From IMG/VR virus record IMGVR_UViG_3300032770_000001, positions 1-64,000 of that record: a stretch of 64,000 bases of DNA. The stretch is one strand, 5' to 3'. Shown here piece after piece: positions 2,006 to 34,192 of this stretch (position 1 is the stretch's first letter; each line of letters starts with the position of its first letter). Under the pieces are notes generated by a model. That model did not search any database. It was not told where the DNA came from and saw nothing but the letters and a program-made list of their open reading frames with translations. The position numbers and the translations under genes are program-made.

Positions 2006-2376
2006 GCCGTTACCTCGGCTGGAAGATTAGGAAGGGCTTTCCACCATTCGATCCCGGATGTTGGGGTAGAAGTGTAGCCCCAGTATCCAATCTCCTCTTC
2101 ATCCGGCACTGCTGGCACCATCCAACTAAATTGATCGCCGAACTGACCTTTGCCCCAATCTGGGAATTCGATCAGTTCGTGCTGACCATCAGGACGCATG
2201 GTCGCTAGAATCTTCTTGACCGGAATGTCCTTGTACCGTTCTTGGCACTTGATAGCACAGGGGGCGCAGTAAAGATCGGGGCAGAACGTCTGGTATTCGC
2301 GCCAGAGTTTGCACCCGTGAGCCCCACATTTAGAGCATTTGTACTTCTTCGGCGGTTTTGAATTGCTGTACTTCAT
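2002..2376 (-). CDS. Cys-rich hypothetical phage protein
   Basis: CxxC motifs; translationally coupled to nampt. Confidence 0.65.
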   Translation of the reverse strand: MKYSNSKPPKKYKCSKCGAHGCKLWREYQTFCPDLYCAPCAIKCQERYKDIPVKKILATMRPDGQHELIEFPDWGKGQFGDQFSWMVPAVPDEEEIGYWGYTSTPTSGIEWWKALPNLPAEVTA

Positions 2377-3806
2377 GCGAACTGTTCTTGTGCCGCCTCC
2401 ACGTAGAAGTCGGACTTGCGGCAGCGGTTCCAGACCTCATCATAGGTCGTTTCGACTTTCAGGTCGCCGTCCTCGAAGATGGTCTCCAGAACGTTGCCAT
2501 AGGCATTCGGGTCTTTCATGGTAACGAAGTCGCCGCTGCCATCCGTTGAGCGATCCACGAGACTCAGACGCCCACCAATTGATGCCTTGGAAGGATCGGT
2601 CTTGGGGTCTTTGTAAACGTCGTGCCAGATACCAGCGCGATTGATGGCGCAGCACTTGATGGCGAAACGCAGGGTGTCGCGATTCTGCTGTTGAAGCAGG
2701 GCACCGCCCATGCCGTATGCCCAGTTGTCCATCGACCATCCCGCACGAGTCAGGACGCCGTTGATGCGCTCGATGTTCTGGTAGTTGACACCGTCGCCCT
2801 GAATGGCGCGAACGGAGGGATTCAGAACCTTCCAGCCCTTGGCGTTCGTTTCGTAGCCGAACTTTTCAGCAAGCGAGATGAACATGTCGTCCAGCACGAC
2901 GCAGGGATCGCCGGAGTCCGGACGCAGCACTGTGGTACCGTTGCGACGGAGAACTTCCGCACGCAACTCTTCGCCGAAGATTTTGTCCACGGCATTCATG
3001 GTGTCGTAAGAATCCACGACGCAGGCGACAAGCCCGTTCGGGAACTTGCGCAGCATGTTGCGGTAGGCGTCGATCTCGTGATCCTTGCCCCACGACGTGA
3101 CCGTCGAGTGCTCCATCGCCGGGATGGAGTTCCCCGGCATCGAGGCACCGTAATACTGCTGGAGCCACTGAATGGCTTCCGGCGTATCCGTACCGTGGAA
3201 GTTAAACAGGTGAGCCGCACCACCGATGGCTGCCGAAACTTCCGAGGAGACGCCACGGTCGCCGAAATCGTGCAACTTGTAATCGATCAGATCGGGGTTC
3301 CCGGTGCGAACCAAATCCTTGCCGATGGTCTGACGGATCATGAACGACAGGGTGCCGACCGTCACCGGATACCACATACGCATCAGGCGGGTCTCTGTCC
3401 AGTTGGTGATCCACGGGAACTCTTTGTCGGTGTTCTCGATGGTCATCATCACCTGACGCTGCGGAACCAACGTGCCTTCTGGGACCGCACGGATGCGGAT
3501 CGGGAGACGACCGCCGTGCTTTTCCAGCATACGCATCCAGCCCTTGAAGTTGAACACGGTCGGATCGCCGAAGTGTTTCGCCGACCAATCAGCCGCATGA
3601 ATCACGTTCTGCTCATTGAAGAACTGCCCGACAAACTGGTTCTTCAGGATGCCCTGCAAGCCAGTCCAGAGCGCACGCTTCCACATGCCGCCACGGGAGC
3701 ACATGTACGAATAGACGTACTCGGTGTCCCACGGGTATTGTGGGTAATGGGTGAACTTGTAGCTGTCGGAGCCGAGGAGCGGATTAGGCTGAAACAGTAT
3801 CGGCAT
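2373..3806 (-). CDS. nadV: nicotinamide phosphoribosyltransferase (Nampt/NadV)
   Basis: DSYKFTH, LHDFGDRG, SIPAMEHS, VVDSYD, LRPDSGD, IQGDG, GMGGALLQ...RDT motifs. Confidence 0.95.
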   Translation of the reverse strand: MPILFQPNPLLGSDSYKFTHYPQYPWDTEYVYSYMCSRGGMWKRALWTGLQGILKNQFVGQFFNEQNVIHAADWSAKHFGDPTVFNFKGWMRMLEKHGGRLPIRIRAVPEGTLVPQRQVMMTIENTDKEFPWITNWTETRLMRMWYPVTVGTLSFMIRQTIGKDLVRTGNPDLIDYKLHDFGDRGVSSEVSAAIGGAAHLFNFHGTDTPEAIQWLQQYYGASMPGNSIPAMEHSTVTSWGKDHEIDAYRNMLRKFPNGLVACVVDSYDTMNAVDKIFGEELRAEVLRRNGTTVLRPDSGDPCVVLDDMFISLAEKFGYETNAKGWKVLNPSVRAIQGDGVNYQNIERINGVLTRAGWSMDNWAYGMGGALLQQQNRDTLRFAIKCCAINRAGIWHDVYKDPKTDPSKASIGGRLSLVDRSTDGSGDFVTMKDPNAYGNVLETIFEDGDLKVETTYDEVWNRCRKSDFYVEAAQEQFA

Positions 3807-4716
3807 GGAGTGTTTTTTCCTTTCTCAGGTTGAGCATCAGCATGTGGTAGAGCACGGAGTGCTCTTCAACCAACACGGCTGGTTGTAGTTTGGATACGTC
3901 GAACCATTTGACTTCTGCGAGATCGTCGCCTGCGGTCGCCGAGAGCGACGAAGCGTAACCACGGAAGAACAACGTGCGTAGCTTGCGGTCGGGCGTGGCG
4001 GCATAGCGCCAATCCGGAATGTTGGCCGAACCGACATAAGTCAGGTTGTCGAGACTGACGTGGGTTTCCTCAAAGAGTTCGCGACGGGCATCTTCCTCGA
4101 AGCTCTTGGTACGCGCTTCGGCGAATCCACCGGGGAAGCGCCACTTGGTTTCATTCGCTCTGCGACCGAGCAAGAGTTCCAGCTTGTCCTCGCTCTGATA
4201 GAGAGCGGCAATATCCACGGTCGGGAAAAGAATTGGATAGCCCTGCGCCGAGGCATAGATCATTCCGGCACGGAAGTCAGCCGACGCGATCACATTGTCG
4301 CTGCATTCGCGGCGGATGTCGGTGCCTTTGATGGCCGTGATCTTCGGGGGAAGATTCAGTTCGAGGGGCTTGAAGCGGCCCGTGTAGTGGGGAACAAAAG
4401 AGTCGCGACCACCATACAGAGTGACTTCGCTGTTGCCCTTGACGACCTTCTTGATCTCAGCGTCGAGTTGGTCGCTCCACTCCGGATCGCCGCGCATGTC
4501 GTCCAGCGGCAGGACTATGAAATCCGGGTACTCCGCTTTTATCATCTTTTCGCGGGTGATGAAATCGAGAGGGTGGTTGAGGCTGATACCACCCGGATTG
4601 ACGCCCACGAATACGATCACTCGTTTGTGGCGTTCCGCAACCTGATTGAACAGTTCGCGGTGTCCATCGTGAAGAGCGTTGACTTGAAAGCGTCCGACGA
4701 GTACGCCGTAGCTCAT
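3784..4716 (-). CDS. nadM: bifunctional NMN adenylyltransferase / Nudix hydrolase
   Basis: GRFQ..LHDGH (HxGH) N-domain; FPGGF.E......EDARRELFEET Nudix box. Confidence 0.9.
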   Translation of the reverse strand: MSYGVLVGRFQVNALHDGHRELFNQVAERHKRVIVFVGVNPGGISLNHPLDFITREKMIKAEYPDFIVLPLDDMRGDPEWSDQLDAEIKKVVKGNSEVTLYGGRDSFVPHYTGRFKPLELNLPPKITAIKGTDIRRECSDNVIASADFRAGMIYASAQGYPILFPTVDIAALYQSEDKLELLLGRRANETKWRFPGGFAEARTKSFEEDARRELFEETHVSLDNLTYVGSANIPDWRYAATPDRKLRTLFFRGYASSLSATAGDDLAEVKWFDVSKLQPAVLVEEHSVLYHMLMLNLRKEKTLHADTVSA

Positions 4717-4743
4717 ATTCCGCCTTTCAATATATTGATGACA

Positions 4744-10267: not shown

Positions 10268-11596
10268 CTATTTCTCGGCTGGTTCCAGTGTGATCTGCAC
10301 CGTGCGGGTTTCCCCGGTGCCGACAATCGTCTTGATCTGGCTGGACTTGACGCCCTTGGCTTCGAACTGCTGTTTCACGCGGTTTGCGCGAGTAGTAGCC
10401 AGCAGTCTATCCTCGGACGGGTTGCGGTTGCCGCGCAGGACGATGACGTAGCCGGGGTGACGGGCAAGAGCCGCCGTCGCAGCATCAATCATTTCCTTGC
10501 AGACTGACGTTACATGGATCGGATCGACGATAGCCGCATCGCCGCCAGCCGGAACGCATTGCGTCTTGGAGGCGAAGGTGCAGATACCGACCGGGATGAT
10601 CTCCTCAACCACCGGAGGGTTGCTGACCGGAACCACGACAGCCGGAGTCGGCGCGGGAGCCGGAGCGGATTGGACTGGAACCACGACCACCTGAGGCGTT
10701 GTGGGGGCAGCCGCTACGACCTGAGGCTCTGGCTCTGGTTCCTTGTACATGCACTCATCGATCATTTTGGCGATAAGTTCGTCCTCGTTTAGACCCTTGT
10801 GGGCTTTCTTGTACGCTTTGAAGGCGTACTTGTCCGAAGCCATGATCGTGCAATAGGGGCGACGTGATCCGGAAATGGCGTAGTTGCGGGCCGTCTCCAA
10901 GATAGCGCAGTTCGGATCGATCTTGCCGCCGCCGAAGGATGCGCCAACAGGCATCGTCTGGACACCAGCGCCGAAACCCTTAAAGCAAGGGCTGGTTGGC
11001 AGTGCCGTGGGAGCGTAAGCCGTGTCCACGGGAATCTTGGAAGCAGCAACGTTCTCGGTCGAGGAGTAAGAGTTGCTGGAGTTGCCGCCGCTGTTGTTGG
11101 ACGAAGAGGACTGTGTCTGGCTCTGTCCCTGCTTCTGTCCCTGCGAAGCATTGCCGCCAGCACCACCCGCACCACCCTGAGCGGTGTTGTTGTTCGTATT
11201 CGTGTTGGACGAGTTGCCGCTGTTATTCACGCCGGATGAGGAAACAGCCGTGCCGCCCGTCGCAGTCGAAGTGGAACTTCCACCTGTTGCGGAGGAAGAC
11301 GAGGAAGATGAAGAACCGGAGTTCGAGGACGAGTTGCAGCTATGCCCCTTGCAGGCACCGCCGCCGCCCTTCGGGTCTTTGTGTGTCTTGGGGACTTCGC
11401 AAACGTAGTAGTGCCCCTTGGTGCCTTCCGACCCGGTGCCGAGGAAATATTGACCGTCGCCGTCTCCTGCTGAGCCGGAGGGTTTGGTCGTGCCCACGTC
11501 AACGCGAGATGCGAGAGGATCGCTGCAATTCCACGCGAACGCCGCGCTGGACATCAAAATCATTGCTACAAAACAGAAGAGACGAAGTGATTTCAT
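10268..11596 (-). CDS. secreted Gly/Ser/Asn-rich protein with C-terminal OmpA-like peptidoglycan-binding domain
   Basis: signal peptide MKSLR...AFA|W after GGGAG SD; C-terminus HP...V.L.G.....E..L...RA..VK......GV. Confidence 0.65.
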   Translation of the reverse strand: MKSLRLFCFVAMILMSSAAFAWNCSDPLASRVDVGTTKPSGSAGDGDGQYFLGTGSEGTKGHYYVCEVPKTHKDPKGGGGACKGHSCNSSSNSGSSSSSSSSATGGSSTSTATGGTAVSSSGVNNSGNSSNTNTNNNTAQGGAGGAGGNASQGQKQGQSQTQSSSSNNSGGNSSNSYSSTENVAASKIPVDTAYAPTALPTSPCFKGFGAGVQTMPVGASFGGGKIDPNCAILETARNYAISGSRRPYCTIMASDKYAFKAYKKAHKGLNEDELIAKMIDECMYKEPEPEPQVVAAAPTTPQVVVVPVQSAPAPAPTPAVVVPVSNPPVVEEIIPVGICTFASKTQCVPAGGDAAIVDPIHVTSVCKEMIDAATAALARHPGYVIVLRGNRNPSEDRLLATTRANRVKQQFEAKGVKSSQIKTIVGTGETRTVQITLEPAEK

Positions 11597-11717: not shown

Positions 11718-11732
11718 GGTTACTGAGGTAAC

Positions 11733-12310
11733 TTACACGCGGACAATCTTTTCGCTGGTAATGCCCTTGGTCGTGTTTCGGGAATCGACCACCAATTTGG
11801 CGGCGTTGACGATCTCCGAATAGTTATAGGACGAGTGATCGGTCAGGATGACTACGACATCGTATTTGTCGATGTCGGTCAACGGAACCGACTCCATGTT
11901 CAACCCGTGATCGCGCACCGCAGGGATGAAGGGATCGTTGTAGTCCACGGTCGCTCCCTCTTCCTGCATCAGCTTGATGATCTCGACTGACGGCGACTCA
12001 CGGTAATCGTCGATGTCCTTCTTGTACGCCATGCCGAGAACCAGCACCTTCGAGCCGTTGATGGCTTTCTTGTGCATGTTCAGGGACTTCGCCACAAAGT
12101 TGCACATGTGGTACGGCATCGCCACGTTGATCTCCCCGGCGAGTTCGATGAAGCGGGTGTGGAAATCGAATTCCTTCGCCTTCCACGAGAGATAGAACGG
12201 GTCGATGGGGATGCAGTGACCACCGAGCCCCGGACCGGGATAAAACGCTTGGAAGCCGAACGGCTTGGTCTTCGCCGCGTCGATGATCTCCCAGATGTCC
12301 AGACCCATGC
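11733..12310 (-). pseudogene. 3' half of a UDP-GlcNAc/UDP-sugar 6-dehydrogenase (WbpA/WecC type)
   Basis: AAKTKPFGF...PGPGLGGHCIP.DP, LG.AYK.D.DD.RESP; the N-terminal NAD-binding domain is missing. Confidence 0.85.
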
Positions 12311-25931: not shown

Positions 25932-25977
25932 TGGTGGGGCAGCGGTGAATCAACACCTGCGCTTGCGCTACTGCCCC
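25932..25977 (-). ncRNA. 46-nt mini-tRNA lacking the anticodon arm
   Basis: GGGGCAG-TA-GCGCAAGCGC-A-GGTG(TTGATT)CACC-G-CTGCCCC-ACCA. Confidence 0.7.
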
Positions 25978-25978
25978 A

Positions 25979-26052
25979 TGGCACACCCGGTGGGATTCGG
26001 ACCCACATGCGCGGTGTTAGAGACCGCTGTTCTGCCAGTGAACCACGGGTGT
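25979..26052 (-). tRNA. amber-suppressor tRNA (CUA), Trp-like body, G73
   Basis: ACACCCG/CGGGTGT-GCCA; perfect stem GCGGT-CT-CTA-AC-ACCGC. Confidence 0.88.
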
Positions 26053-26092
26053 ATTTTCAAAAAGACAATCGTCTTTTATTCCGTACAAAACT

Positions 26093-26142
26093 TGGTGGGC
26101 GGTGATGATTTGACTCACCCAGCTTTCGCTGTTTTACCGCCC
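26093..26142 (-). ncRNA. 50-nt mini-tRNA lacking the anticodon arm
   Basis: GGGCGGT-AAAA-CAGC(GAAA)GCTG-GGTGA(GTCAAA)TCATC-ACCGCCC-ACCA. Confidence 0.72.
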
Positions 26143-26143
26143 G

Positions 26144-26225
26144 TGGCACGCTCGGAAGGACTCGAACCTTCGACCCCTCAGTTAAATACTGAGTGCTCTG
26201 AACAAACCAACTGAGCTACGAGCGT
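26144..26225 (-). tRNA. trnK: tRNA-Lys(UUU) variant with A33 and expanded D-loop
   Basis: CTCAG-TA-TTT-AA-CTGAG; D-loop AGTTGGTTTGTTCA; GCCA. Confidence 0.75.
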
Positions 26226-26226
26226 A

Positions 26227-26302
26227 TGGTGCGCGGTGAAGGAATCAAACCCCCGACCTCCGGGTCTTGCGACCCGGCGCTCTAACACTGAGCTAACCGC
26301 GC
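26227..26302 (-). tRNA. tRNA-like RNA with 8-nt or GNRA-closed anticodon arm
   Basis: GCGCGGT/ACCGCGC-ACCA; CCGGGTC-GCAA-GACCCGG; D-loop lacks GG; T-loop TTTGATT. Confidence 0.7.
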
Positions 26303-26303
26303 A

Positions 26304-26335
26304 TGGTGGGCACCCCAACTTTCGCCAGAGCACCC
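26304..26335 (-). ncRNA. 32-nt 12-bp minihelix with GAAA loop and ACCA end
   Basis: GGGTGCTCTGGC-GAAA-GTTGGGGTGCCC-ACCA, six G.U pairs. Confidence 0.68.
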
Positions 26336-26445: not shown

Positions 26446-26880
26446 TTAAGCCCCGATACGATCCTGTATCGGATAGCCTCCCTCAAACTTCAAAAAAAGA
26501 TTTGGAGCAGGAGCAGCCTCCGCGTGTCTCCACAAACCGTAGTTCGAGAGTACACGGCGCTGCTCCTGCGTGAGCGGGACCGTGGCGACAGCCGTCAAAC
26601 CAAGGTTGTCGTCCGGCTCCGAAAACACGGAGTACCCGATTTCTTTGTCTTTCAACTTGTTGATAACACGGAGTAAAGCGGACTTGTCCGGCACGCCGAT
26701 CACCACGAGATGCGGAATCTGATCGTAAGACGGATCGAGACCCTTCGCCATTTCAAACGTGGCGTGGTTGCTTTGAACTATCTGTTGTGCTAGGGAAATG
26801 TCTTGCCGAACGAAGACGTAGAAGTAGTGTGGTGCTGGTTGCTGCTGATTAACCTACAGATCGCCGATTGCTTTACGCAT
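26446..26880 (-). CDS. Pth2-fold (PTRHD1-like) peptidyl-tRNA hydrolase with in-frame amber at 26854-26856
   Basis: AGGAG SD, ATG 26880: MRKAIGDL*VNQQQPAPHYFYVFVRQDISLAQQIVQSNHA...HLVVIGV...L....I.YSVFSEPD....TAVA..P. Confidence 0.8.
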
Positions 26881-30832: not shown

Positions 30833-30895
30833 GTTCGTTCCCTCTCAGGCAACCTTCTGTTCACAAAATCCAACTGTTCATTACGAATGAACGTC

Positions 30896-31250
30896 CGGGG
30901 ACCGAAGTCCCCGGTTCTGTTGCAAGGTGCCGTTCAAACCCCGCCAGCAAACCGCAATTAAGCGGCTGCTGCCATTGCCATTGCCTTTGGAGCGTTAGCA
31001 GTTATGTTTTCCGTGTCCGTTGTACGCCGCCGCCGTGTTGCAAATTAACGGTGGTCGCCAGCACCACATCGGTGCCTCGGTAGGCCACAGCATCCGGGGT
31101 CGTCGCTCTCTGTCTCATGCATCTCCGTCGAAGCCTTGTCACGCCCATATCGCGGTGCAAGTGTCCATCAATTTGAATTGGTGGACGTGCCCGGAATCGA
31201 ACCGGGGTCCGAAAATGTGAATCAGCGCGTTTCTCCATCCGGTATGACGT
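30896..31250 (-). ncRNA. ssrA: circularly permuted (two-piece) tmRNA
   Basis: acceptor piece ...GGTTCGATTCCGGG-CACGTCC-ACCA (3' end 31179) lies upstream of coding piece GGGCGTGAC..TTCGACGG (5' end 31146); G3.U70; tag ANAPKAMAMAAAA* at 30999-30958; P2 helices pair. Confidence 0.92.
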
Positions 31251-31344
31251 ATGCCCAGCCTGTACGCCGAAACGTCAGGCCAAACGGTTCTCCGGATGGT
31301 ATACGACCATCACTACTATAGTACCAGAAAGTTGGGGTATTTAG

Positions 31345-32825: not shown

Positions 32826-33659
32826 TTACACTCCGGAATAATTATTTCGTGGTCGCCCCTCACCCAGTCTGACACGTTCGTACTTGTCAAACTCGCAGAG
32901 GCAGTTTTGAAGGTCTTGAGCCGACAGCTTCGGATATTTGAAGTCCAGTTCTACGTAAGGACTGATGAGGGCTTTCAACTTCAGCAACTCTACCCGCCAT
33001 TCGCTATCATCCCAGCGGTAGTCTACCGGACGATTCGTAACGCGAGCAAGCCCACGACGGCTGCCCGGTCCGGGAACGGCGAACTCCCACCAGTCAAGGC
33101 ATCGCTCCAACCAAGGCGTGAACTTCGCGTCGGCTATGATCTGCCCGGAGATGAATTCACCCATACCATTGAACTGCGTCAGCCAATGGTGGATGGCGTG
33201 GAGGCTGCTGGAGTAACCGTTGATCTCATCCCTATGTTCGTAGAGTGGATCGAGAACTTTTTGAGCCAGATATTGCGCTTTGGAAGGGAATCCCTTCTTG
33301 GCGGGAACGATGTAAACGCCAGTGAACGCTTTCTGGTGGTCAGCAACCAGAGAGTCAATCACATCGATGAAATTTTTCGGATTCCACGGTATCGGATAGC
33401 CCATGCGTTCCAACGTCGGAGGCCAATTCACGAGGCGTGCGACCGCCATTGCAAACCAGACATCGGAATCGTACTTGTGCGGTTCGCGCCACTCGTTGGC
33501 AATCCACTGCGTCACCTTGTCGAGTTCGCGGTAGACGTTGCAGAAGCGATAGTCACGAAGGATCGGATCAGTCGTCCAAGGCTTCGGTTGTCCATCTGCT
33601 TTACGCAGGTAGATAGCGTGGCGTTCTTTGATCCAATTTGCGAGGGCTTCGACTCTCAT
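32826..33659 (-). CDS. 5-hmdU DNA kinase helical-domain / aGPT-PPase family protein (thymidine hypermodification)
   Basis: WIKERHAIY.RK..G..KPWTTDPIL..YRFCNVYRELD; PGPGS.RGL; DLQNCLCEFDKY.R. Confidence 0.85.
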   Translation of the reverse strand: MRVEALANWIKERHAIYLRKADGQPKPWTTDPILRDYRFCNVYRELDKVTQWIANEWREPHKYDSDVWFAMAVARLVNWPPTLERMGYPIPWNPKNFIDVIDSLVADHQKAFTGVYIVPAKKGFPSKAQYLAQKVLDPLYEHRDEINGYSSSLHAIHHWLTQFNGMGEFISGQIIADAKFTPWLERCLDWWEFAVPGPGSRRGLARVTNRPVDYRWDDSEWRVELLKLKALISPYVELDFKYPKLSAQDLQNCLCEFDKYERVRLGEGRPRNNYSGV

Positions 33660-34192
33660 AGCAGTTTGTAAGAAACAGTCGCTCCACCGTTGGTGCGGCT
33701 CCCGCCGATATACTCCGCTCGGAGAATCGGCTTCACGCTTTTGTATTTCAGATTCGTTTTGCCCGTTTCCACATAATACCGCAGACGAGCCTCGATCTCC
33801 GGGATGTGGGCTTTGCGAAATTTGAAAGTGCCATCGACCGGGGATTCCGGATTGTTATCATCGGAGATTGAAAAACCAACTTCGCAACCGAGATGACCGA
33901 CCAATCCTCGCAGGAAACGAAACATGAAATTCGCCAGTTTCTCTCCGTATGGGTCATGGGGAACGTAGAACATCACGTGACCACGATTGCGAAAATTTGC
34001 GCTTAGTGTGTCGAACCCCTTGAGTTTAGTTAAATCTGGATCAGGATCGCCCTGACAACTGCTGGTGGTTACGACACCGAGATCATTGAGCAAACGCACG
34101 ATGCCGACGACTTCAACATCGATCTCTGCACCGGGGAGTCCCGCTTCGTTTAAGAGTTCTGGAATAACAACAGAGGGATGATCTACTCGCAT
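33656..34192 (-). CDS. Tyw3-like (T.SSC.G motif) protein, paralog 2
   Basis: IDVEVVGIVRLLNDLGVVTTSSCQG...GHVMF. Confidence 0.5.
   Translation of the reverse strand: MRVDHPSVVIPELLNEAGLPGAEIDVEVVGIVRLLNDLGVVTTSSCQGDPDPDLTKLKGFDTLSANFRNRGHVMFYVPHDPYGEKLANFMFRFLRGLVGHLGCEVGFSISDDNNPESPVDGTFKFRKAHIPEIEARLRYYVETGKTNLKYKSVKPILRAEYIGGSRTNGGATVSYKLL

Follow-up and report, generated by a model that had tools for sequence, protein, structure and literature searches.

Anticodon-free, CCA-ending minihelices and mini-tRNAs conserved in the tRNA arrays of huge phages

For decades, to our knowledge, tRNA minihelices have been familiar solely from laboratory work and as a postulated precursor of tRNA. Synthetic minihelices and microhelices, each an acceptor-TpsiC helix with NCCA, serve as model substrates for RNase P, the CCA-adding enzyme, and aminoacyl-tRNA synthetases, several of which can charge them. 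Here, we describe three natural units of this kind in a 64,000-nt stretch of DNA (the window), which is part of a 455,708-bp IMG/VR contig (record IMGVR_UViG_3300032770_000001, positions 1 to 64,000). The units are interleaved with tRNAs in a single array. They are genuine, conserved, structure-selected genes, in which the acceptor end is kept and decoding is discarded.

26304..26335, minus strand: 32-nt simple minihelix (type B) with 12 bp, a GAAA loop, discriminator A, and CCA
26093..26142, minus strand: 50-nt three-way mini-tRNA (type C) with a 7-bp acceptor stem, two short hairpins, and ACCA
25932..25977, minus strand: 46-nt three-way mini-tRNA (type A) with a 7-bp acceptor stem, a small hairpin, a T-like arm, and ACCA

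With laboratory minihelices, the phage units share a helix of ~12 bp corresponding to acceptor plus T stem, a single-stranded discriminator followed by CCA, identity positions, and the lack of an anticodon. They differ in being natural genes, known from sequence, and in a helix length of 12–14 bp. While laboratory minihelices carry a 7-nt T loop, the phage units mostly have a 4–6-nt loop built on a GNRA-type tetraloop, and types A and C contain extra small hairpins. The tRNA-like domain of tmRNA likewise combines an acceptor stem and a T-like arm with CCA and has no anticodon arm; a tmRNA gene of the permuted type lies 5 kb from the units. In contrast to tmRNA, the minis of the window have no G3·U70 pair, no mRNA-like domain, and no pseudoknots; tmRNA is the best Rfam match to the three units, yet it reaches 7.5 bits compared with a gathering threshold of 47.

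RNAC and RNAD of phage T4 are well over 100 nt and hence much longer than the minis. These RNAs (species 1 and 2) are small stable non-tRNA RNAs in the phage tRNA cluster (PMC3014915). They resemble the minis as unexplained small RNAs within a phage tRNA gene cluster, and CCA-ending RNAs of 120–180 nt found in relatives of the window may be their closer analogue. YrlA, mascRNA, and the 3' tRNA-like structures of plant viruses are also partial tRNA mimics handled by tRNA enzymes, but the phage minis are much smaller, do not lie at a genome 3' end, and lack the Ro-binding helix of YrlA. Matches to YrlA (RF02553) score 16.9 bits in the window and 20.9 bits in L016 (threshold 69) and span a tRNA together with its neighbour; here and below, L-numbers denote loci from related huge phages in IMG/VR, whose contigs reach 463 kb.

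ToxI-type antitoxins are tandem units of ~34–36 nt that are processed to protein-binding monomers, and phage arrays of them counter abortive infection. However, ToxI repeats are almost identical, are cleaved by the cognate toxin, and adjoin an endoribonuclease gene, whereas the phage minis differ in sequence, share a hairpin-NCCA shape and tRNA-type junctions, and, as minihelix arrays, adjoin a Thr-rich leader open reading frame (ORF) followed by a DUF6915-like protein. Phage tRNAs, in turn, evade or replace tRNAs cut by retron effectors, PARIS, and Septu (PMC11555353; bioRxiv 10.1101/2023.03.15.532788; PMC13096335). Both are tRNA-related phage genes in arrays to which a counter-defence logic may apply. 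Counter-defence tRNAs, however, are complete, decode, and restore translation after anticodon-side cleavage, thus acting as replacements, while the minis, being unable to decode, would be decoys at the acceptor end. The neighbouring tRNAs (Lys-UUU with A33; an Ile/Thr/Gln cluster) may be of the replacement kind. No description of natural phage minihelix genes was found in full-text searches of one literature library, an absence that is not proof. The anticodon-free minis apparently constitute a real, undescribed kind of RNA gene, since related phages conserve whole tandem arrays.

The sequence-only reading had placed the three units at the coordinates listed above, on the minus strand, within 1–2 nt of the adjoining tRNAs; inspection of the sequence and folding agree, with spacers of 1, 1, 1, and 2 nt. 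The 32-nt unit folds exactly as claimed, with six G·U pairs among its 12 bp, a GAAA loop, and the terminal ACCA. In the 50-nt unit, the 7-bp acceptor stem encloses two hairpins, the first of 4 bp with a GAAA loop and the second of 5 bp, and ACCA forms the 3' end. While its acceptor stem and GAAA hairpin stand as first described, the second hairpin is not T-arm-like in relatives, in which a GNRA tetraloop caps it. The 46-nt unit, sandwiched by two suppressor tRNAs, also has a 7-bp acceptor stem and ends in ACCA; its two hairpins measure 3 bp and 4 bp, the latter with the 6-nt loop UUGAUU. A D arm and a 7-nt anticodon loop are absent from the predicted folds of all three units. They share the acceptor reading GGG...A73, and pair 3:70 is G-C in each.

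On the minus strand, folding energies of the 32-, 50-, and 46-nt units amount to -18.1, -23.8, and -23.4 kcal/mol, corresponding to z = -3.5, -5.5, and -3.4 relative to dinucleotide shuffles. The plus strand folds more weakly in all three cases. For the 32-nt unit, this strand asymmetry results from the G·U pairs: its complement reaches -6.3 kcal/mol and z = +0.5, which is the level of shuffles, confirming the earlier observation that the G·U pairing is restricted to the minus strand. As had also been anticipated, standard scanners miss the units; neither ARAGORN nor Rfam, the latter including hits at E <= 10, makes a call on any of the three.

Counterparts of all three window units, with compensatory changes, are present in related phages. 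We retrieved 42 loci via the protein encoded directly upstream of the array and further loci via a second conserved protein, and located mimics with a script for stems closed by N-CCA together with ARAGORN. GenBank phage DNA yielded generic tRNA similarity only and no close relative, and among the matches listed from two IUPAC scans of IMG/VR, most are chance matches. The clade carries four related kinds of anticodon-free tRNA mimic (types A–D). In all 46 mimics examined, an N-CCA end follows a fully paired stem.

Type B comprises simple minihelices of 32–36 nt with 12–14 bp, a GNRA-type loop, and N-CCA. It occurs as a single unit in the window, L012, and L015, whereas elsewhere one to five units lie between a promoter and the leader ORF, mostly in tandem with 1–3-nt spacers. 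About a dozen distinct type B sets are found among the loci examined, the tandem arrays consisting of two to five minihelices each. Beyond the window, 25 further type B units keep the helix length of 12–14 bp, and minihelix loops read GAAA, GCAA, GAGA, UAAC, or 5–8-nt variants rather than the 7-nt T loop (UUCRANN). The 32-nt unit of the window has a 35-nt counterpart at the matching array position of L012 (11019-11053), in which the stem changes keep pairing.

A gapless alignment of 15 type B units of 34 nt demonstrates selection on structure. In this alignment, 91.8% of cells pair and 13 of 13 pairs vary on both sides, while sliding the register lowers pairing to 34–53%. The covariation score is 1.007 compared with 0.317 in shuffles and is attained by 0 of 500 shuffles. 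Mean column identity is 62%, only C32, C33, and A34 being invariant. Within a pair of orthologous five-unit arrays, five double compensatory and four one-sided pair-keeping changes have accumulated, and not one canonical pair is broken. A covariance-model search of other phage arrays, as originally suggested, was productive: the model built from the 15 units detects seven more in the retrieved loci at E = 0.03–0.3. At E <= 1 it leaves the 32-nt unit of the window and the 35-nt units of L012 and L015 unmatched, and it finds no match in the cultured Xanthomonas phage XbC2 or the huge phage LR756511, two phages outside the clade that share the gene similar to peptidyl-tRNA hydrolase 2 (Pth2).

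Hairpin counts over 652 kb of non-redundant loci point in the same direction. Stable 11–15-bp hairpins followed by N and CCA occur 22 times, compared with a mean of 5.9 (standard deviation 4.1) for the other 63 triplets, and TTT, the terminator signal, is the sole triplet that outnumbers CCA in this position. Moreover, another hairpin lies within 4 nt in nine cases for CCA versus two over all other triplets combined. The enrichment appears only with the energy filter and the tandem criterion; a loose count of hairpin plus CCA that permits G·U pairs and one mismatch without an energy filter gives 61 versus a mean of 48, i.e., no enrichment. Taken together, hairpin counts, covariation, and the changes between orthologous arrays exclude a chance origin. 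Thus, the proposal of natural minihelix and mini-tRNA genes under RNA-level selection within tRNA arrays is supported, as the units are conserved, covary, and have expanded in tandem behind promoters.

Type A units (45–53 nt) combine a 7-bp acceptor stem and a variable hairpin with a 3–4-bp arm bearing a UUNARU loop. At least eight members are known including the 46-nt unit of the window, each beside a tRNA(CUA) and downstream of a Pth2-like gene. Their pairs were counted by script from anchored ends, as MAFFT gave no structural alignment: all 56 of 56 acceptor-stem cells are Watson-Crick, each position shows two to four kinds of pair, and covariation extends to the small arm. The type A unit of L302 has the identical acceptor stem to the 46-nt window unit and also lies between two suppressor tRNAs. 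In three members (L035 2884-2932, L039 10481-10533, and L302 5115-5167), the hairpin-1 loop is the 7-nt UGCUAGY, which holds both the amber anticodon CUA and the codon UAG and forms the palindrome GCUAGC in L035 and L302. In the window unit and three others, hairpin 1 carries a plain tetraloop and not the UGCUAGY loop. The L031 unit has three CUAG repeats in place of this loop.

Type C (50–51 nt) is represented by the window unit and four counterparts (L012, L014, and two in L016). Its acceptor stem is invariant, while both inner hairpins vary in a compensatory fashion, for example from CAGC/GCUG to GUGG/CCAC; in relatives, a GNRA loop closes the second hairpin. Type D units are full-size tRNAs, in which the anticodon loop is swapped for a tetraloop on a 5–7-bp stem or for an inserted hairpin. 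They occur in the window (26302-26227), L012, L015, and L016, with covarying stems and GCAA, GAAA, or CUCG caps. L015 contains a full-size version with the exact acceptor stem of the 50-nt unit, and that version likewise has no anticodon loop. Recent deletion scars, which had been named among the outcomes that would overturn the proposal, are excluded by conservation in relatives with compensatory change.

Relatives also encode RNAs of 120–180 nt that have the acceptor stem, T arm, and CCA of a tRNA but a large conserved insert in place of the D and/or anticodon arms:

L012 11191-11339 and 11575-11722; L015 11901-12061, 12144-12262, and 12273-12450; L016 11172-11312: CCA-ending RNAs of 120–180 nt

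Rfam finds nothing at these RNAs in the loci scanned (L003, the equivalent of L012, and L016). In addition, L012 contains a 65-nt hairpin with a GCCA end (11732-11796). The window has neither the 120–180-nt RNAs nor the 65-nt hairpin.

The junctions of the mimics are of the tRNA type, with spacers of 1–3 nt. Among 38 units, base -1 is most often T (20), followed by C (12) and A (6), and never G, and the first trailer base is mostly A, often within the motif AGUU; true tRNAs at these loci behave alike. The 50-nt unit has the 3' trailer AGUUU in common with true tRNAs. Sigma-70-like promoters lie 9–12 nt 5' of type B arrays (10/12 in L019, an extended -10 in L047). A hairpin with a 3' NCCA is a classical minimal substrate of RNase P. 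We infer from these features that the units would share a transcript with the tRNA array and mature like the adjoining tRNAs, RNase P generating the 5' ends and 3' trimming stopping at the encoded CCA. The predicted products are stable RNAs of 32–50 nt with a tRNA-length acceptor helix, a discriminator, a free CCA, and no anticodon.

The acceptor ends fall into recurrent classes. All phage tRNA-Thr have G1-C72, C2-G71, and U73, and all type B units with U73 start with GCC, two of them matching a phage tRNA-Thr acceptor stem exactly. Phage tRNA-Gln has U1-A72 or A1-U72 with G73, units with these pairs and G73 resemble it, and several G73 units are one or two changes away from tRNA-Gln acceptor stems. 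Further recurrent classes are GGG...A73, C1-G72 with G73, and CGG...A73. Overall, the distance to the nearest phage tRNA acceptor averages 1.92 compared with 2.32 +/- 0.17 in the null (p about 0.013). G3·U70, the mark recognized by AlaRS, occurs in 2 of 46 mimics.

The array of the window spans 26335-25852 on the minus strand in the order 32-nt unit, tRNA-like gene, tRNA(UUU), 50-nt unit, 40-nt gap, tRNA(CUA), 46-nt unit, and tRNA(CUA). Its other members are:

26227..26302, minus strand: full-size tRNA-like gene without an anticodon loop (type D), 76 nt, reported by ARAGORN as 'tRNA-??? (gcaa)'
26144..26225, minus strand: tRNA with anticodon UUU (Lys-type), A33, and a long D loop (Rfam tRNA, 53.6 bits)
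26060..26077, minus strand: A/U-rich hairpin in the 40-nt gap 3' of the 50-nt unit, read from the sequence
25979..26052, minus strand: amber-suppressor tRNA with anticodon CUA (ARAGORN, Rfam), with A1-U72 and G73 as in phage tRNA-Gln
25852..25929, minus strand: second amber-suppressor tRNA with anticodon CUA (ARAGORN, Rfam)

The type D gene retains both D and T arms, and its "anticodon arm" consists of a 7-bp stem ending in a GCAA tetraloop; the gene scores 55.2 bits against Rfam tRNA, with the loop region skipped in the alignment. ARAGORN misses the tRNA(UUU). This gene looks like a UUA suppressor, but its anticodon loop U-A-UUU-A-A corresponds to anticodon UUU with A33. Position 33 of its counterparts is G in L012 and the normal U in L015 and L016. 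A33 adjoins the cut site of Lys-specific anticodon nucleases, and resistance might result. The hairpin in the gap has 7 bp, four A and GAC pairing with GUC and four U, and a matching A/U-rich hairpin follows the 50-nt unit in L016 (about 11148-11166). It was not called in a terminator scan and may be a processing or weak termination signal. A promoter scan assigned none to the window's own array, which may be transcribed by read-through from the upstream gene. L014 (12326-12405) and L039 (10585-10662) contain suppressor-like tRNAs with 8-nt anticodon loops, for which ARAGORN gives the anticodons 'ctag' and 'ccta'.

Further features of the neighbourhood are:

26446..26880, minus strand: Pth2-fold (peptidyl-tRNA hydrolase 2-like) gene directly upstream of the array
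30867..31271, minus strand: permuted (two-piece type) tmRNA (ARAGORN; Rfam tmRNA_permuted, 78.8 bits)
19541-19443, minus strand: Thr-rich leader ORF of 32 codons (MNMTSQTRTTTSTQRITTATTGG...), with a promoter-like site at about 19608-19580
19416-19399, minus strand: terminator-like hairpin after the Thr-rich ORF
19397-19017, minus strand: DUF6915-like gene downstream of the Thr-rich ORF, near the tRNA Ile/Thr/Gln cluster
2373-4743, minus strand: NAMPT-family nicotinamide phosphoribosyltransferase beside a NUDIX protein, an NAD salvage pair
32826-33854, minus strand: 5-hydroxymethyldeoxyuridine (5-hmdU) DNA kinase, which implies hypermodified thymidine in the phage DNA

Both the adjacent Pth and the nearby tmRNA of the sequence-only reading are confirmed, the former as a Pth2 fold by structural modelling and the latter by ARAGORN and Rfam as a permuted type. 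The Pth2-like protein matches Pfam PTH2 weakly (E = 0.024) and has no match in a PDB sequence-profile search, but its AlphaFold model (pLDDT 87.1) retrieves Pth2/Bit1 structures as all of the top 13 Foldseek hits (TM 0.55–0.75). The tmRNA tag peptide ends in ...AMAMAAAA, and each relative's tmRNA has a different tag. An in-frame TAG occupies codon 9 of the Pth2-like gene (26856-26854), and an early TAG within the first 10 codons is present at the corresponding position in all 11 relatives examined (L012, L014-L020, L026, L029, L047); gene callers place the protein start after the TAG. Because of this early in-frame TAG, synthesis of the Pth2-like protein must depend on the adjacent amber suppressors, and judged from the sequence the codon looks like a built-in switch, by which the enzyme would be made only under amber suppression. 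The order Pth2-like gene, tRNA(CUA), type A unit, tRNA(CUA) is kept down to about 35–40% Pth2 identity.

Type B arrays belong to a second conserved context. In relatives, the order is promoter, type B array, small Thr-rich ORF (26–32 aa), terminator hairpin, DUF6915-like protein, and tRNA Ile/Thr/Gln cluster. Between the equivalent promoter and leader ORF, arrays vary from zero to five units. The window contains the corresponding promoter-leader ORF unit without minis. The Thr-rich ORF is conserved in many relatives, where minihelix arrays lie directly before it, and together with its hairpin it resembles a thr-operon-type leader peptide attenuator, here putatively of phage tRNA genes. Pfam and PHROG searches with neighbouring proteins returned no informative matches, and no aminoacyl-transferase gene was recognized among the neighbours scanned.

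What might such RNAs do? We favour, with a probability of roughly one in three (about 0.35), that they are RNase P-matured, non-decoding mimics of the acceptor end, which would serve as decoys or competitive substrates for enzymes that attack the CCA end. The minis would act in trans, standing in for tRNA 3' ends toward proteins that read only acceptor stem and CCA. The best candidate targets would be host immune or toxin effectors that inactivate tRNA at its acceptor end, such as the CCA-pyrophosphorylating toxSAS (CapRel, FaRel2), MenT/AbiEii nucleotidyltransferases, and CCA-trimming or acceptor-stem RNases. Whatever is damaged would be repaired or replaced by the nearby Pth2-like enzyme, tmRNA, and additional tRNAs. 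Pth is a known antidote to toxins that acetylate aminoacyl-tRNA, in keeping with a neighbourhood that would serve to protect tRNA 3' ends.

We rank the decoy reading first because even the full-size versions have specifically lost decoding, the units fall in different acceptor classes, and copy number varies as in accessory genes, as expected for arms-race genes. Further, FaRel2, an anti-phage toxSAS, efficiently pyrophosphorylates a synthetic minihelix of tRNA-Gly, its determinants being positions 1:72, 2:71, 4:69, and 5:68 (bioRxiv 10.1101/2024.07.05.602228). Thus, such a toxin accepts a bare minihelix, and four of the five Thr-like units listed, with G1 C2 N3 G4 R5, fit these determinants. 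Finally, most mimics probably stay uncharged, which would leave their CCA ends exposed: G3·U70 is rare (2/46), and ThrRS, GlnRS, and IleRS rely strongly on the anticodon.

Several points weigh against decoys. Titrating a catalytic toxin would demand very abundant or tightly binding decoys. The acceptor identity of type A is not conserved, although its UUNARU loop is, which suggests that shape and not identity is read. Resemblance to tRNA acceptors is clear for the Thr-like and Gln-like classes only and modest overall. Many relatives have the equivalent operon without type B units, and the window has just one. The CUA-containing 7-nt loop of three type A relatives could mean that these units derive from a suppressor tRNA or still partly function as one.

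A different role in trans, which we judge unlikely, is that of aminoacyl carriers or synthetase ligands, charged according to acceptor identity and then feeding a non-ribosomal acceptor or holding synthetases or EF-Tu. The combination of acceptor stem and discriminator into Thr-like, Gln-like, and C1-G72/A73 classes suits such a role, as do the charging of synthetic minihelices by several synthetases, the conserved neighbour with the fold of an esterase for acyl-tRNA ester bonds, and the removal of the anticodon from an otherwise retained tRNA, which fits exclusion from the ribosome. This reading is weakened by the scarcity of G3·U70, the acceptor mark that makes minihelices good substrates, by the anticodon dependence of ThrRS, GlnRS, and IleRS, by the unconserved acceptor identity of type A, and by the lack of a recognizable aminoacyl-transferase gene among the scanned neighbours.

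A comparably low probability attaches to cis-acting modules, i.e., RNase P entry sites or protective ends that punctuate long transcripts and define where adjoining tRNAs and the leader mRNA end, and whose released pieces have no role of their own. The units indeed sit at transcript starts, between promoter and Thr-rich leader ORF, and between tRNAs, they have tRNA-like -1 and trailer nucleotides, and in relatives they vary in number and are dispensable. However, one site would suffice for this purpose, yet three to five different units are kept, each with compensatory evolution, and their discriminators and first pairs fall into tRNA-like classes. Moreover, full-size anticodon-less tRNAs would be needless for punctuation, and the true tRNAs already abut without such spacers.

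Less probable still are helpers of recoding or rescue, which would cooperate with the suppressor tRNAs, the Pth2-like enzyme, and the tmRNA, acting as A-site acceptors of stalled peptides, SmpB or EF-Tu ligands, or partners of the suppressor tRNAs. This proposal draws on the conserved gene order around type A and the suppression-dependent Pth2-like gene, and on the joint presence of CUA and UAG in the UGCUAGY loop of L035, L039, and L302; type A may then represent D-arm-less relatives of suppressor tRNA, and members with the UGCUAGY loop might be 53-nt D-arm-less amber suppressors. Yet, plain tetraloops in the window type A and three others indicate that the CUA/UAG loop is not the conserved part, a tmRNA-like G3·U70 is missing, and type B arrays are tied to the Ile/Thr/Gln tRNA operon rather than to suppressors. 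A-site entry without an anticodon is also very inefficient. We consider it similarly improbable that minis and anticodon-less tRNAs are aminoacylated or read in vivo through an acceptor "operational code", as identity-coded carriers or decoys; if true, genes for tRNA halves that operate without an anticodon would be known from nature for the first time.

Functionless tRNA remnants with deleted internal arms, as the full-size L015 tRNA with the exact 50-nt-family acceptor stem and the shortened-suppressor look of CUA-bearing type A might suggest, are very improbable and largely refuted by covariation, given that the units persist across 35–75% Pth2-like identity with stems kept fully paired by compensatory changes, loops converged on stable, mostly GNRA-type tetraloops, tandem arrays with their own promoters, and an invariant NCCA. 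Other candidates were rejected outright: CRISPR-like or ToxI-like repeats, as the units are not sequence repeats; intrinsic terminators, as there is no U tract; att-site tRNA fragments, as both acceptor strands are present; and CCACCA degradation tags, as the sequence is simply C71 C72 A73 plus CCA.

Phage tRNA arrays are under-annotated, since these genes escape current scanners for tRNAs and RNA families. The presence of conserved, identity-diverse minihelix genes in stop-codon-recoding huge phages points to a use of the acceptor end apart from decoding. If the decoy reading is true, these phages would possess an RNA-based counter-defence against a growing set of immune effectors that attack the CCA end, and simple RNAs of 32–36 nt would become available as reagents for probing such effectors.

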